Below, piece by piece: positions 20,048 to 54,156 of a stretch of DNA of 64,000 bases. This DNA is from Hyphochytrium catenoides (lineage: Eukaryota; Protista; Hyphochytriomycota), in assembly GCA_900088475.1 (NCBI GenBank), contig FLMG01004035.1, positions 1 through 64,000 on the forward strand. The letters are read 5' to 3'. Every line of letters begins with the position of its first letter. The first letter of the stretch is position 1. Below the pieces are notes generated by a model that saw only the letters and a program-made list of their open reading frames with translations, was not told the origin of the DNA and made no database searches. The position numbers and the translations under genes are program-made.

Positions 20048-20851
20048 ATGGTCGCCGCAGCCTGCTTCCAGTGCGGAACTCCGTTCACCAACCCGGCAGA
20101 GAACTTCTGCCCCAAGTGCGGCACGCAGAAAGCCGGTGTCCCTACAGCTCCAGTTGTAGGTGCAGCTCCTCAGACGACCTTCGTCGTTCACGTGACGAAT
20201 GGCCCCGTCCAGCAGGCAGGCACTGACGCTTATGGCTACTTCAACCCGCAGAGCAGCTCCTGGAGATCTGGCATCTGCGACTGCTTCCAGTTCCCAGTGC
20301 CAAACTGCTTAATGACCTACTTCCTGCCCTGCATTACCTTCTCCCAGATCAACGCCAGACTAGGCCTAAGGACCTACCAGCAGTCGTTGTTGATCTCTTT
20401 TGGTGCGTGGGTCGGCCTGATCATCGGCGCAGGCATGTGGGGAGCTAGAAGCTGCGACTACGAAGTACGGACAAGCATCGTAAGTGGAGGTACAGTTTAT
20501 AGATCATACGGCAACTGTGACTATAATGTCGTCAACTTTATTGGTCTCGCTCTCTACTGGTTGGGCCTCATAGCGGTTCTTGTTGTCCTGACTCTACAAA
20601 GAGGAGCAGTGCGCACGGTTCTGGGGCTTCCAGGAAGCTCTTTTGAAGATTGCCTCTATTCTTGGTGCTGCGGATGCTGCTCGCTCAGTCAGCTGGCTAC
20701 CCAGGCTGGATCTTTCAAGCCAGGCTCATGTGAGTTCAACTCTCCGCCTGCATCAGGCAGCGTCGTTGGTGCCTCCCAGCCAGCATACACCGCAGCTGCT
20801 AGCCCAACCCCAGTAGCTCCTAGTGCTCCAACTGTGAGCAGCCAAGTTTAG
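20048..20851 (+). CDS. PLAC8-family Cys-rich membrane protein with N-terminal zinc ribbon; intronless
   Basis: CFQCG...FCPKCG zinc ribbon; WRSGICDCF...CLMTYFLPCITFSQINARLG; RGAVRTVLGLPGSSFEDCLYSWCCGCCSLSQLATQ (PLAC8 signature). Uninterrupted 267-aa ORF. Confidence 0.88.
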   Translation: MVAAACFQCGTPFTNPAENFCPKCGTQKAGVPTAPVVGAAPQTTFVVHVTNGPVQQAGTDAYGYFNPQSSSWRSGICDCFQFPVPNCLMTYFLPCITFSQINARLGLRTYQQSLLISFGAWVGLIIGAGMWGARSCDYEVRTSIVSGGTVYRSYGNCDYNVVNFIGLALYWLGLIAVLVVLTLQRGAVRTVLGLPGSSFEDCLYSWCCGCCSLSQLATQAGSFKPGSCEFNSPPASGSVVGASQPAYTAAASPTPVAPSAPTVSSQV

Positions 20852-48117: not shown

Positions 48118-48456
48118 ACACACATGACTAAACACAAACTAGGAGCAAACTCACGCTCCCTAATACGGGGGGCAAGAGTGAGGTTACTAGTGGTATCAAA
48201 GCACAAACCCAGTTGAGGAGGTCCACGGATGCGCTGTGTTTGGTCGTTAAGTGCGAGTGCGAGTGAGTGGTGTTTATTGCCGTAAAGGGTGCGATGGGCG
48301 TTACACATGGGGCGTAGTAATGACAAGGTCGTACTGTTAGACCCTTCAAAGCCCAATGACTGTTTAGTAGTACGTTTCTGTACCAACTGAGTGAAGACAT
48401 CATCCATCGACAAGCCCAAACAGTTAGAAACCCAGAGAGAAGAGAAGCGCGTGCGC

Positions 48457-48458
<2 letters not shown>

Positions 48459-48491
<33 letters not shown>
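48459..48491. repeat. (GA)n microsatellite running into an assembly gap
   Basis: Perfect GA run followed by Ns. Confidence 0.9.
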
Positions 48492-49039
48492 NNNNNNNNN
48501 NNNNNNNNNNNNNNNNNNNNNNNNNNNNNAGTCACAAACCTGGAAGTGGATTAAGTACGCGAAGATAGAAGAAGCTTGATGAACAGGCTTAGCTGAACGA
48601 GGCCCCAGGTCACACCGCGCACGCTGGCGCTCCTGCCCGATCGTATGAGCTGCCCGTCGTGCGGCACAGGGCAGTAGGAGCACAACATTAGCGAGCGCGT
48701 AGTGGTCTATAGACACTATAATGGACCTGAGCCCATCGGGCTCTCACTGGTCTCGGAAGGAGTAAGGTCCGGGATAAGAGGACGAGCCAAGATTGAGGAA
48801 AGATAGGCGCAGATCGGGCTCAGGTGGCGCCAAGAGTTATTCTGCTGTNNNNNNNNNNNNNNNNNNNNNNNNNNNNNNNNNNNNNNNNNNNNNNNTTTCC
48901 ATGAAAGAAAGATACTTTACAGGCAACCTGGCGCCATGGTTGGGGAGAAAGTCTACCCTTAGGGTGGGCCGGCGGAAATATCGCAGCTCGGCTCAGGGAT
49001 AGCAGAGCAGAGGCTAAAAAGGACTCCTGACAAGTTATA

Positions 49040-52000
49040 ATGCCAGGCGTTCAGGTCCGTCCGGCTGATGATTCGCAGCCTCCTGGTGTGGCAAGAGGGA
49101 GCGTCTTTGGACCGTCTTTCCCTGGCGGCGGTCACAATGATAGACATGAACCACCCCCCAGCACCTCGATCGGCCCCCTTGCGAGCCTGCAGGGCGCGGG
49201 TAGCCAAGAGGCTGCCACCGGGTCCTTACCAGGGCAACGAGGTTCCGTCCATATCGCCGGCTATGCTAGGTTTGCGAATATCGCTGACGTGATGTTGAAG
49301 AAGGCCAAGGACAAGACGCGCTCTAATAAAGAGCAGTTGGTGAATTTCCAGAAATCTAATAGGAAAGTGCTCGTGAAGGACAAAAAGTCATTGCAGAAGC
49401 TGTTGTTGAAGATCTGGAGGAGCCCCTTGGTAAAGCGCGCAATCATGGTCCTAAACGTTGCAATAATCTTCGGCTCTAACCTCATCATGGTTTTGGAGAC
49501 ATGTGATGGACCGAACTACTATGATGAGGCAAATAGGTCGCTCTCTGACTATCCGGAACTGTTCACTTCAGAGCAGTACGATCAGCTAGAGATCTTCTTC
49601 ACCGTTGTCTTCACAACGGAGGTCCTCTTTCGACTGGCGCGCTTCCGTTCATTCAACGCCTACATCAGCAACTTTCATAACGTGGTGGACTGGATCTCCA
49701 TTCTTCCTCTATATTTGCAGCTCATCTTCAAGGCGTCTGGGAGCTATGGGGAAGATCCTACGAATGAGAATACCTTGATGAGGAACACAGTCACACTTCT
49801 AAGAATATTCCGTGTCCTGAAAGTGGGTCGGCACTTCGCGGACATGGAGGTGCTAGTGGATGCGCTGTTCCTGTCTTTCAAGCCTCTTATTATTCCGATG
49901 GTCTTCTTCGCTGTGGTCGCTCTTATTTTTTCAGTAGCGCTCTTCATGCTGAACCCTTGTATGGATAAGGACGAGTGCAGTCACTCGTTCACGGACGTCT
50001 TCAACGCGTTGTACTTCGTGATCGTCACTATGCTTACGGTCGGCTATGGAGACATCGTCCCAGGAGCGGAGAATTTCCTAGCGCGCTTTGTGGCCGGCGT
50101 AGCAATGGTCTTCGGCTCGTTATACCTTGCCATGCCTCTCGCTGTCATCGGTAACAACTTCGAGGCGGCGTGGAAGAAGCATATACGCAAGCTTCAAAGA
50201 CAGAGAGTGAAGGCCGTATCAGAGCGGCTAGTAGCGGGTACTGCAGATATCTCAGAGTTGAAACTCGAGGAGGATGTGATCATCCGCATAGGGAACAATA
50301 GGCTGCTCGAGACATACTTTGACCTCTCATACTACCTTGGAAGATTAGAGGAAACGATTCGCACTGTCCCAGAGAAGAAGATTGTAAGTAGAAATGAGAC
50401 TGTCCGTCGACGAGTCCTTTGTAGGCCTTGACTGGTATTCGAATGTCTGCTGATTCATTGTCTCACTGTTCACCACCTTGTGGATATGGTCGTACGCCGC
50501 CGCCTACTTACCACGCCTTCCGTATCTTCCCTGTGCAGGATTCAAACCAGTCCTCAGCCATGATGCAGGACATTAAGGCTGCCATCAACAAGGAACTGTC
50601 CACCTGCATCAGCTCGCATGAAGCTCTTATGAGAGACGCTAAGATAACATTAGGACCTCTGCCTGAAGATATCTTCTGCAACCTGGTCCGCTTGATGAGG
50701 TTCGCAAAGATCTCCACTAGCAAGTATAAAATTATCCTCGAACGACGAAAAGCGGCCGCTAACCAGTCAAAGAAGAAGAAGAAGCTGAGGCGGAGCAGTA
50801 CGGTTCTGGTCATGAAAATGAATGAGAAGCAACAGAAAAGGTGATCGAGACTTTCGCTAACTGTTCCATCTTTGAATTTCCATGTGCAATTACTTGCCCA
50901 TTCCCTGCCATGGGCAAAGTCTATCCTGGATCTGTCCTGTTCGGCTCACACATTTGCGTGTAGACTGGATAACTCACGCTTGCTATTCTTTCCCTTAACT
51001 GTCGTCAACTCCTGCCCATCGTCCCCAGGCTACCGGAGAAGATTTACCTTGCATTGGAGCTACCACAGTCTTCTCCTTTTGCTATGATGCTCAGTCGTGT
51101 TCTCTTATTTGTCAATATCATGAGCGTCATTGTATTCTTCGCCCAGACGATGCCTGAGCTTCAGAAGTTAGGACCCCAGTCGCCCTTATGTAAGGAGGTT
51201 GTTCAGTCTTATTGTCAAGAGCAGACTCGTGCAGACCGTGGTTGTTATACGGTGAGCCTTGTAACCTTACTATATTCGAATGAGGGCCGCGCGAACTAAC
51301 AACCCTTGCCTGCTTGGTCCACCATCTCTCCGTCTGTGCTCCCTTGCTTGACTGATCAGACGGACAACCAACCTCTCAAGTTTGCTTGTTCTCTCAAAGA
51401 AATAACTCCCGACTGTTACGAGGGCGAATCTAACTTTGGCACGAGAATCACAGAGCTCAGGCCTGACTGTGAGAAGATGTTCCACACCCCTTCTGGGAGA
51501 TACATATGTGACAGACCCCAGTGCAACTATAAGCATGAGGTAAGTGGCGACGGTGTAGGGAACATTAGAGGTAACGATGTCTTCCTATCCAGGCTGTCAG
51601 GGTAGATGGTGTTTATGCTTGTTTCAAATTTGCCCCCTCACCCTCTCTCCTTCCCCTCCTTGGCGCTCTCCTGATCCCTCTTCCTTCCTTTGTCTCTTTG
51701 ATCCTCTGTCTGACCCTTCTGTGCAGCCCATGTATGACGCCTCAGGCTACTGGCAGCCTCTAGAAATATTCTTTACTACGATCTTCACGCTGGAGCTGAT
51801 ACTTCGGGCGTACGGCTCTCCGACTTGGAAAAACTTCTTTCATGTCTATAACTGCGTGGATCTCTTGTCTCTTTCGCCCTCGTACTACCAGTTCATAGCC
51901 AGCGCTATCACAGGTAGACGAAAATGACCGACAACTCTTCTATCAGCCTACTAGTACTCCTTATATCCCAGTCGATGAGTTTGACGCTCTTAGCGCCGCA

Positions 52001-54156
52001 CTTGCTCCTGCAGTCAGCCGTTCACCGACAGGATCGGCCACAATTCTTTTGCCTTTTATTGAACCATTGCTCTGTCCCCCTACGATGGTGTCTGGATTGT
52101 TAAGGCAACCGGCCCTTCCGTGCTATAACTCACCTGCTACCAATAGGGGTCCCTATTATCTATGAAATATCTAGCTCAGGACTCAGTTGGAATGCCGGTA
52201 TGAAGCTGCTCAAGTTCTCTCGAGTGGTTCGTCTGCTGAGGGTAAGTACAAAGAGTATGAGCATCATGTTGAGAACTCGAAGCTGAACCTTGACTGTTTC
52301 GTATCTCAGCGGTTTTCAGACTGGGAAATTCTCAGCCGAACCTTTTCAGTGATCTCGGGCAGGCTCTTTATCCCGGTGAGTTAGTGCCAGAGCTCTAATA
52401 AGACGACGGCTCTATGCTTATCTCGCTGTTGGTTTCTTGCTCTGTGATCCTCCGCTGTTTTGCAGGTCACCTTTCTCTCCATCTTTATCTTTATTGGTGG
52501 CTATGTGGAGTTCCAGTTAGAACAGGGTCATGACTGCTTCTACTATGCTGAGAACCCGCTGTGCTTTGACAGAGCTACGAACCTTACGGTAAGTAGAGAA
52601 ACAGATAGAGAAGAGGCATTCAGACGCTGTGACAGATTAGCTTAACGGCTTGATCCCTGAGCCTTATGTGGACCCAATAAGCTGTCCGCGACGCATCTGG
52701 ATCCTCCACCCCATCTTCGTCTCTCGATTGGCAAACTAATCTTAGCTGCTTGTAGCTAACTCCCTGCTAACGCACTCGTAGGCTAACCTCACAGCCCTAC
52801 TGACGGCTGCCGGGGTCGAGATGGTGGAAGGGCGGCGCTATCTTATTAATATGTTTGGGAATCCTTCTCTTATTAAGGATGTAGCCATAGGAAGTTGGTT
52901 CAGTGCATTCACGTAAGTGGAGAGCAGAGGAGAGAATTGCATGAAAGGGACGGACGGGGCGACGGGGCTCTTACCCTTCGGAACGAACTCTAGTTTCCCG
53001 CATCGAGAGAACGTCTGCTGCTGGTTGTCCTCTGGTACCATTTTTTGCTCCAGCACCCAGCTCCCCTTTTCCTCGAAGGAGAACTGGCACTTTTCTGTTT
53101 TTCATTGTGCAGCTTCTCACATCTCCCCTCTTATTTACATTCTCAGTATGACCACTACTGGCTATGGCGATGTTTATCCTGTGACTCGGTTTGGTCGATT
53201 ATTTGCGGTCATCATGATGATTGGAGGCTCAGCGTGGAACTCAATGCCTCTCTCGCTCGTGGGCGGCGAGTTCTACTCCATCTACTCTGAAAAGGAAAGC
53301 CAAAGACGACTGCAGGTAAGTCGGAAGCCCTCTTCTCACTCTTGGTCACCTTTCCGCAGCCCTTCTAGCCCTGTGAAGCGCTGCGTCAACGTTTGAGGTA
53401 ACGCTCAGCATTGACTCCTCTGTTGCCCCCATCTCTCTTCTGGCTCCGGTCAAACAGGAGATGCGCAAAAATAGAAAGAGCCTTTGGTTAGACAACAAGA
53501 ACACTCGACTGTGGAACCAGTACGCGGAAACGCTAACGCTGCTGCAAACCATGGTCGCATTAGTAGAAGGTCTGCCCTCTTCCTCTCTCTCTGACGCAAT
53601 GGTGTCACCTAGGTCAATGTCCTTCAATACATCGTCATCTACCCTTACCTTTGAGGGTTCTTGTCTGCCTCAACCGTTATAGCCTATCGATGGCCTTGAT
53701 AGCTTATTAGCGCTGATCCTATATGTCATGACATTCTGACTTGCTCTGTCCTTTCTTGCAGAGATCCCGGATCAGAACAAGGCAAAAGGAGGAGGCCCTA
53801 AAAAGAAAGCGACAAAAGTGGAGCCCGAGGAGTTGAATGATCCGGACACTGTCTTTTTGAAGGAGGAGATCCTGAAAAAGCTTCATCATGTACAGGTAGG
53901 CAAAAGCAGAGAGAGGAAGGGAACAGACGGCCTAGCGGGAAAGAGGCAAGTTCACACCTTCAGGGGATAAGGGTGTTCAACATAGTGAACAATATGAGTG
54001 AAGAGCGACCGAAGTGAAACGAGTCTGTAAGGGGTCATCATGGCCTCTTTGATTCCTGACGTTACCCTCTGTTTGGCCTCTCTTCAGCTCTTGCACATGA
54101 AGATTATAAAGATTATGGCCATCGCCAAGCAGGAGGGTATCGTCTCAGACCTTTAA
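49040..54156 (+). CDS. Two-domain (2x6TM) voltage-gated potassium channel, ~1044 aa, 13 exons
   Basis: Exons 49040-50383, 50539-50840, 51029-51251, 51360-51539, 51727-51913, 52147-52241, 52310-52375, 52466-52588, 52782-52912, 53147-53315, 53458-53569, 53762-53895, 54088-54156 sum to 3135 nt in one frame, all GT-AG. Repeat I: S4 LLRIFRVLKVGRHF, pore VTMLTVGYGDIVP. Repeat II: S4 MKLLKFSRVVRLLRRF, pore FTMTTTGYGDVYP. Confidence 0.9.

Follow-up and report, generated by a model that had tools for sequence, protein, structure and literature searches.

A tandem Kv-like channel gene with two predicted voltage-sensor and pore repeats in the hyphochytrid Hyphochytrium catenoides

Tandem Kv-like channels, in which a single chain carries two Kv-like repeats of six transmembrane segments (6TM), were described by sequence analysis in 2020 (Pozdnyakov et al., 2020; PMC7576140). 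They were reported in oomycetes, mainly Aphanomyces invadans (for example XP_008861292.1) and also Phytophthora infestans (XP_002907851.1), in dinoflagellates and in the chlorarachniophyte Lotharella; K+ permeability was proposed for them, and several independent fusions were suggested as a possible origin (PMC7576140). Here we describe a gene of this kind in a stretch of 64,000 nucleotides from Hyphochytrium catenoides (assembly GCA_900088475.1, contig FLMG01004035.1, positions 1 to 64,000; hereafter the window), where it occupies 49040..54156 on the + strand and encodes two predicted repeats, D1 and D2, in that order. Because the class has been in the literature since 2020, the locus is less novel than an earlier note on this DNA had implied, and the gene is a new member of an already described, functionally untested family. 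What is new here is a member outside the oomycetes, in a hyphochytrid, a lineage sister to them; Hyphochytrium appears neither in the 2020 study nor in its supplements (PMC7576140). Our comparisons also add ochrophyte relatives, identified by sequence in Triparma and Heterosigma, and eight nearly invariant cysteines in the predicted S1-S2 loop of D2.

The predicted protein resembles the oomycete tandem channels in carrying two Kv-like 6TM repeats per chain, TVGYG-type filters in both and no cyclic-nucleotide-binding domain (CNBD), in the low identity between its repeats (~27-30% in these channels), in unequal S4 charge numbers, and in the clustering of D1 with D1 and of D2 with D2. In the window the two repeats are 27% identical, within the limit of <=30% that marks the class, and their S4 segments carry four and six arginines or lysines, respectively. 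Both filters are of the TVGY/FG type, the grouping of D2 with oomycetes is tentative, no C-linker or CNBD was found in the pieces searched, and the presence of two 6TM repeats follows from gene model and homology. The protein differs from the oomycete channels in that its repeats are only about 27-35% identical to theirs, in that its host is not an oomycete, and in that its gene has 12 introns. A further trait reported for the oomycete cluster is an S4-S5 linker that is short in repeat 1 and long in repeat 2 (PMC7576140); in our alignment the S4-to-S5 stretch is equally long in D1 and D2 and gap-free, in the window and in oomycetes alike, the segment-end definition used in that study not being reproducible.

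Beyond this class, the Shaker-family channels Kv1-Kv4 share with the window protein the E/F/E pattern in S2, a regular S4, the GYGD signature and the S6 proline; they are, in contrast, tetramers in which each subunit has one 6TM unit and a T1 domain at its N-terminus, whereas the window protein has no T1 and joins two unlike repeats in one chain. The two-pore channels TPC1-3 share the 2 x 6TM chain. TPCs dimerise into a pseudo-tetramer, and their filters, which lack GYG, conduct Na+ or Ca2+; in sequence they are nearer to Cav and Nav channels than to Kv. Since both window filters are of the GYG kind and the best solved relatives are all Kv channels, the likeness to TPCs is one of architecture only, and neither the top 60 sequence matches nor the top 50 fold matches included a TPC. 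In K2P and fungal TOK channels each chain contributes two pore loops of the GYG type, and the channels are dimers, as we infer for the window protein; K2P channels, however, have no voltage-sensor domains, and TOK channels are 8TM proteins with a single S1-S4-like part, whereas the window protein has a full S1-S4 in both repeats.

Rebuilt independently, the gene model comprises 13 exons on the + strand, from an ATG at 49040 to a TAA ending at 54156, and its open reading frame (ORF) of 3135 nt, with one terminal stop, encodes 1044 amino acids (aa). The exons lie at 49040-50383, 50539-50840, 51029-51251 and 51360-51539 (exons 1-4), at 51727-51913, 52147-52241, 52310-52375 and 52466-52588 (exons 5-8), and at 52782-52912, 53147-53315, 53458-53569, 53762-53895 and 54088-54156 (exons 9-13). 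All 12 introns are GT-AG and measure 68-234 nt, and reading through any of them would reach a stop within 1-37 codons; the mean intron length given in the H. catenoides genome paper is 208 bp (PMC5795050). An in-frame TGA stands four codons upstream of the ATG. When four homologues were compared by tblastn with the whole window, matches were confined to the channel exons and followed the expected order. Exon 2 is the weakest part of the model because its sequence is unconserved; it holds an open frame of 138 codons, in which the GC bias by codon position (GC3 0.63, GC2 0.37) is that of exon 1. An alternative acceptor for exon 9, meant to drop a seven-residue insert relative to oomycetes, was rejected, as the next AG is out of frame, and a scan for bacterial-type promoters and terminators between the repeats was disregarded as not meaningful for a eukaryote.

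Exon 1 (49040..50383, +) encodes an unconserved N-terminus (aa 1-120), the complete D1 (repeat aa 121-376, with S1-S6 at aa 134-374) and the first part of the linker. Pfam scans were run on separate exons and pieces rather than on the spliced 1044-aa protein, D2 (aa 554-926) being scanned piecewise because it is split over eight small exons. In exon 1 they place Ion_trans at aa 140-376 (E 4.7e-30) and Ion_trans_2 at aa 291-374 (E 6e-14); for D2, the match in exon 5 covers positions 34-85 of Ion_trans (E 1.5e-7), and exon 10 matches Ion_trans_2 (E 7.7e-9) as well as the last part of Ion_trans. The alignment of D1 with D2 runs from S2 to S6 (E 3e-19). The S6-I to S1-II linker spans aa 375-567, about 190 aa, and includes exon 2 (50539..50840, +; aa 449-549), a lysine-rich, presumably cytoplasmic segment whose length, though not its sequence, is as in the homologues. 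Exon 3 (51029..51251, +) carries the conserved pre-S1 motif of D2 (aa 554-564), the S1 of D2 and the start of a cysteine-rich loop, and exons 11-13 (53458..54156, +) encode a C-terminal cytoplasmic tail (aa 941-1044) that is predicted to be helical and is unconserved (5-20% identity to homologues). By sequence, the best solved relatives of exon 1 are Kv2.1, Kv3.1, Kv1.2 and Kv4.2 (E 3e-22 to 1e-18; Kv2.1 3e-22).

The voltage-sensor and pore signatures are present in both repeats. The S4 of D1 (49793..49834, +) has a basic residue at every third position (R255, R258, K261, R264), and that of D2 (52200..52312, +), interrupted by intron 6, has K765, K768, R771, R774, R777 and R778; both align with the S4 of homologues. 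The S2 pattern E-x6-F-x2-E occurs in D1 (E184/F191/E194) and in D2 (E696/F703/E706), and we take it to correspond to the charge-transfer centre of Kv1.2. The selectivity filter reads TVGYGD in D1 (aa 333-338; 50036..50053, +), in agreement with the family motif table, and TTGYGD in D2 (aa 887-892; 53154..53171, +), where it falls in the Ion_trans_2 match of exon 10. TTGYG is also found in D1 or D2 of several other family members, so that the difference between the two filters, which the earlier note had singled out, is present and yet not special, and reads as ordinary family variation. Each repeat is, as predicted from these motifs, a Shaker-type voltage sensor and pore with a GYG filter, for which voltage sensing and K+ conduction would be expected.

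What the earlier note had observed was thus confirmed in all details that DNA can show. The single 13-exon frame of 3135 nt emerged again from the rebuild with all of its introns GT-AG; Pfam and the D1/D2 alignment agree on two S1-S6 repeats joined by a linker close to the roughly 200 aa first estimated; the basic S4 and GYG filter of each repeat, TVGYG and TTGYG, and the quoted S6 strings are all in the translation; and the two expected Ion_trans domains appear as D1 in exon 1 and, in pieces, as D2 through exons 5 and 10. The same note had recognised no T1/BTB or cyclic-nucleotide-binding domain, and neither BTB/T1 nor cNMP-binding domains were found in the Pfam scans of exons 1, 2 and 11-12, exon 13 lying outside the scan. 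BTB/T1 (PF02214) was absent from exon 1 at E values up to 0.1, and animal Shaker matches do carry PF02214; exons 2 and 11-12 gave no Pfam match of any kind.

That the two repeats belong to one chain is supported by the homologues. In BLASTP of the spliced model, single collinear alignments span D1, linker and D2 in eight of them: P0021 (E 2.5e-103), two from Lagenidium (P0006, 2.3e-99; P0018, 1.2e-88), and one each from Achlya (P0010, 7.7e-97), Phytophthora oleae (P0026, 6.2e-88), a marine contig (P0023, 8.5e-87), Saprolegnia (P0007, 9.1e-79) and Aphanomyces (P0028, 4.9e-77). The marine relative is encoded by an uninterrupted ORF of 2946 nt on a contig of 3113 bp and matches Ion_trans and Ion_trans_2 twice each in Pfam, and the cluster of P0002 includes an MMETSP transcript ORF labelled 'complete'. 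In the full-length alignment, homologues cross the exon junctions without gaps, except for one insert of seven residues in the variable turret loop of D2, directly after the exon 8/9 junction. The pre-S1 family motif aligns directly after the exon 2/3 junction, at the very start of exon 3, and in the frame of exon 3 there is no ATG between the stop at 50970-50972 and position 51029; exon 3 must therefore be spliced to an upstream coding exon. The one-chain architecture of the earlier note thus finds support in collinear homologues and in repeat-specific phylogeny, and the uncharacterised protist homologues it had anticipated were found in oomycetes, Triparma and Heterosigma. Its description of a poorly characterised class holds in that the literature yielded no functional study, and needs correction in that the class had already been described in silico (PMC7576140). 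We note that the public model of P0021 has a 15-residue insertion within the D1 filter, which most likely reflects an intron left in place when that model was made.

An HMMER search with exon 1 against 1.84 billion representative proteins returned 7732 matches, the best of which mostly measured 950-1300 aa and were matched in at least two stretches; on domain parsing, the order in most long matches is a D1-type repeat and then a D2-type repeat. This library lacks the protein of the window itself, the best identity in it being 36% among long matches and 52% in a fragment of 233 aa, and a search for recorded contigs encoding the exon-1 ORF found none. The closest named relatives are those of oomycetes, from Aphanomyces, Saprolegnia, Achlya, Lagenidium and Phytophthora, and a profile search with family members added full-length proteins of Triparma laevis and T. 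strigata, which share 55% identity with P0001, and a fragment from Heterosigma akashiwo. In a tree of 75 rows, all D2 repeats form one clade (support 81), one starred side (96*) takes in all D1 repeats together with fragments of tandem proteins, and single-repeat Kv-like proteins and another kind of tandem are placed elsewhere. In a more careful tree, for which D2 sequences were rooted on D1, the D1/D2 split received 100/100; the D2 of the window lies, with moderate support, within a clade of 13 oomycete D2 repeats and that of P0021 (93/89), sister to the main oomycete group (91/76), the Triparma D2 repeats fall inside the D2 clade, and the placement of the window's D1 is not resolved within the D1 clade. 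As judged from these trees, D1 and D2 are two old, separately conserved repeat lineages, and the D1-D2 family, to the extent that sequence similarity defines it, spans pseudofungi and ochrophytes (Triparma and Heterosigma).

The same searches brought up other multi-repeat proteins. A second kind of tandem (P0008, P0013, P0024, P0029, P0034) has two D1-like repeats rather than the D1-D2 pair; in the 75-row tree its repeats stand outside both the D1 and the D2 clade, beyond the starred split from D1, and they therefore probably arose by independent duplications. In some HMMER matches, namely P0004 (1748 aa), P0005 (2542 aa), P0035 and P0038 (~800 aa), one chain has three, four or even more Kv-like repeats of the 6TM kind, with pores of GYG type; these could be natural three- or four-repeat K+ channel-like proteins or fused gene models.

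A conserved trait of D2 is its predicted extracellular S1-S2 loop, encoded by exons 3-4 (51189..51524, +), which holds eight cysteines: C603, C611, C621, C633, C642, C660, C673 and C678. Among 27 tandem proteins, drawn from oomycetes, Triparma relatives and metagenomes, 26-27 keep each of these columns, and the turret pair C307/C313 of D1 (25/27) and the turret cysteine C823 of D2 (26/27) are kept nearly as strictly; in an alignment of 28 proteins, ten cysteines are invariant and three more nearly so. AlphaFold modelling of P0010, the homologue from Achlya (mean predicted local distance difference test, pLDDT, 75.7; predicted template modelling score, pTM, 0.63), gave confident folds for both repeats and for the loop, with a pLDDT of about 81-93 in the loop block, and the best fold matches of the model are Kv4.2, Kv1.3, Kv2.1 and Kv1.2 (TM-score by target up to 0.89). 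By its conservation pattern, the predicted eight-cysteine loop is a family hallmark and not a local insert. The 2020 description discusses neither loop cysteines nor the dimerisation of tandem channels (PMC7576140).

We consider it likely that the locus is one intact, intron-rich gene for a D1-linker-D2 tandem Kv-like channel, whose paired chains would form a two-fold symmetric, K+-permeable, voltage-gated pore. By analogy with TPC and K2P channels, two chains would assemble with the pore domains of D1 and D2 alternating around one central pore. The resulting pseudo-tetramer would have a two-fold symmetric filter, K+-permeable and under the control of voltage, and its gating would draw on two classes of voltage sensor, with four S4 charges in D1 and five or six in D2. 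On sensor II, the cysteine-rich loop would face outward, probably held by disulfide bonds, and may stabilise or regulate the assembly.

Several observations weigh against this proposal or limit it. Transcript support for the locus is absent, as a run search listed no RNA run, and the single chain is therefore supported by homology and comparative evidence, which we grade as strong. Sequence conservation is lacking in the linker (10-16% identity to homologues) and in both tails, so that the exact boundaries of introns 1 and 2 are given by GT-AG signals and reading frame alone. An assembly gap (a run of N) at 48850-48896, ~150 nt upstream of the start codon, makes an extra 5' exon possible. The branches of the window sequences are long, at 1.25-1.84 changes per column (1.84 for D2 in the careful tree), and their exact position in the tree is thus tentative. 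In the literature search, no paper after 2020 on tandem Kv-like channels came up, nor any functional study or electrophysiology of the family. A wider run search listed only three DNA-like runs, a metagenome and three tiny runs; the runs that contain exon 1 are one from 2017 and two from 2011 of a single sample, in line with the one HiSeq lane and two GAIIx lanes of the H. catenoides genome paper (PMC5795050), and the metagenome and the tiny runs, compared with the locus, gave nothing except one metagenome contig of 204 bases in exon 1. That contig, from a 2023 metagenome, matches 49718-49921 identically save for A>C at 49789, and, being near-identical to exon 1, indicates that the organism or a very close strain was present in the environmental sample.

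Some of these points could also be read in favour of two adjacent single-repeat Kv genes misread as one, gene A ending at 50429-50431 or at 50842-50844 and gene B comprising D2. Both stops would be real if introns 1 or 2 stayed unspliced, and an in-frame ATG at 50443 could begin a second protein; the unconserved linker and the missing RNA run would fit as well. We nevertheless hold this to be quite improbable, given that the second gene would start merely 12 nt past the stop of the first, that exon 3 opens with a conserved motif and has no ATG upstream in its frame, that all close homologues are D1-D2 fusions of similar linker length, one of them an uninterrupted ORF, and that D1-type and D2-type repeats are kept paired in the same order throughout the family. 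Even less credible to us is a decaying or unexpressed gene copy: the absence of expression data and the long tree branches would be expected of a pseudogene, and yet the frame is intact across 13 exons, all splice sites are canonical, and the family-invariant residues that were checked (filters, 8/8 loop cysteines, turret cysteines and S4 charges) have all been kept.

A rival on function would accept the gene as real and tandem, and differ as to what it does: the product might be a non-selective cation channel, one repeat might be a degenerate regulatory module, or the protein might be an obligate heteromer with a tandem paralogue. GYG-type filters are known in the non-selective HCN channels (PMC7576140), the V of the filter is replaced by T in D2, and the S4 charge number is unequal in D1 and D2. 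On the other side, T-x-G-Y-G-D is kept in both repeats, TTGYG recurs in other members, the closest solved relatives are K+-selective Shaker-family channels and not HCN or CNG, and regular S4 charges and the acidic and aromatic pattern of S2 are kept in both repeats; we regard this alternative as unlikely, less so than either of the readings that break up or disable the gene.

If the tandem K+ channel that we favour is what the gene encodes, it would be one of a set of natural two-fold symmetric Kv channels in which to test how two sensors and two filter halves share one K+ pore. To our knowledge, this question has been studied so far only with engineered concatemers. The locus does not open it, because the family was reported in 2020; rather, it widens the family to a hyphochytrid and, via its relatives, to photosynthetic stramenopiles, and it highlights a conserved, probably disulfide-rich loop that the original description lacks. 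The kalium channelrhodopsins of optogenetics come from H. catenoides, which lends some practical interest to the native K+ channels of this organism. Since the literature searched holds no recording from any member of the family, all members are equally suited to a first functional study. We also raise a bolder possibility, about which we are more doubtful than confident: the D1-D2 tandem with its eight-cysteine loop may be a single ancient invention shared by pseudofungi and ochrophytes, and the loop would then be an extracellular domain, not described so far, that serves the regulation or assembly of a K+-selective 'two-pore Kv'. A single ancient invention, if true, would contrast with the several independent fusions suggested as possible in the 2020 study (PMC7576140).

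Of the further literature consulted, a search for functional work on oomycete Kv channels yielded only a zoospore membrane proteome paper, in which tandem Kv channels are not treated; a bioRxiv paper on 'tandem Kv' concerns tandem gene arrays and not tandem repeats, and was set aside; and the word 'channel' does not occur in the text of the H. catenoides genome paper (PMC5795050). A further run of N lies at about 48400-48540, so that two gaps stand just upstream of the channel gene, whose promoter region is therefore incomplete; one of them is flanked by a CT/GA microsatellite, which is read as SLSLSL or ERERER in ORFs. Elsewhere in the window there are ORFs for a PLAC8-family protein (20048-20851, + strand; E 1.5e-17) and for a PHD-finger protein (262-972, - strand; E 8.8e-8).

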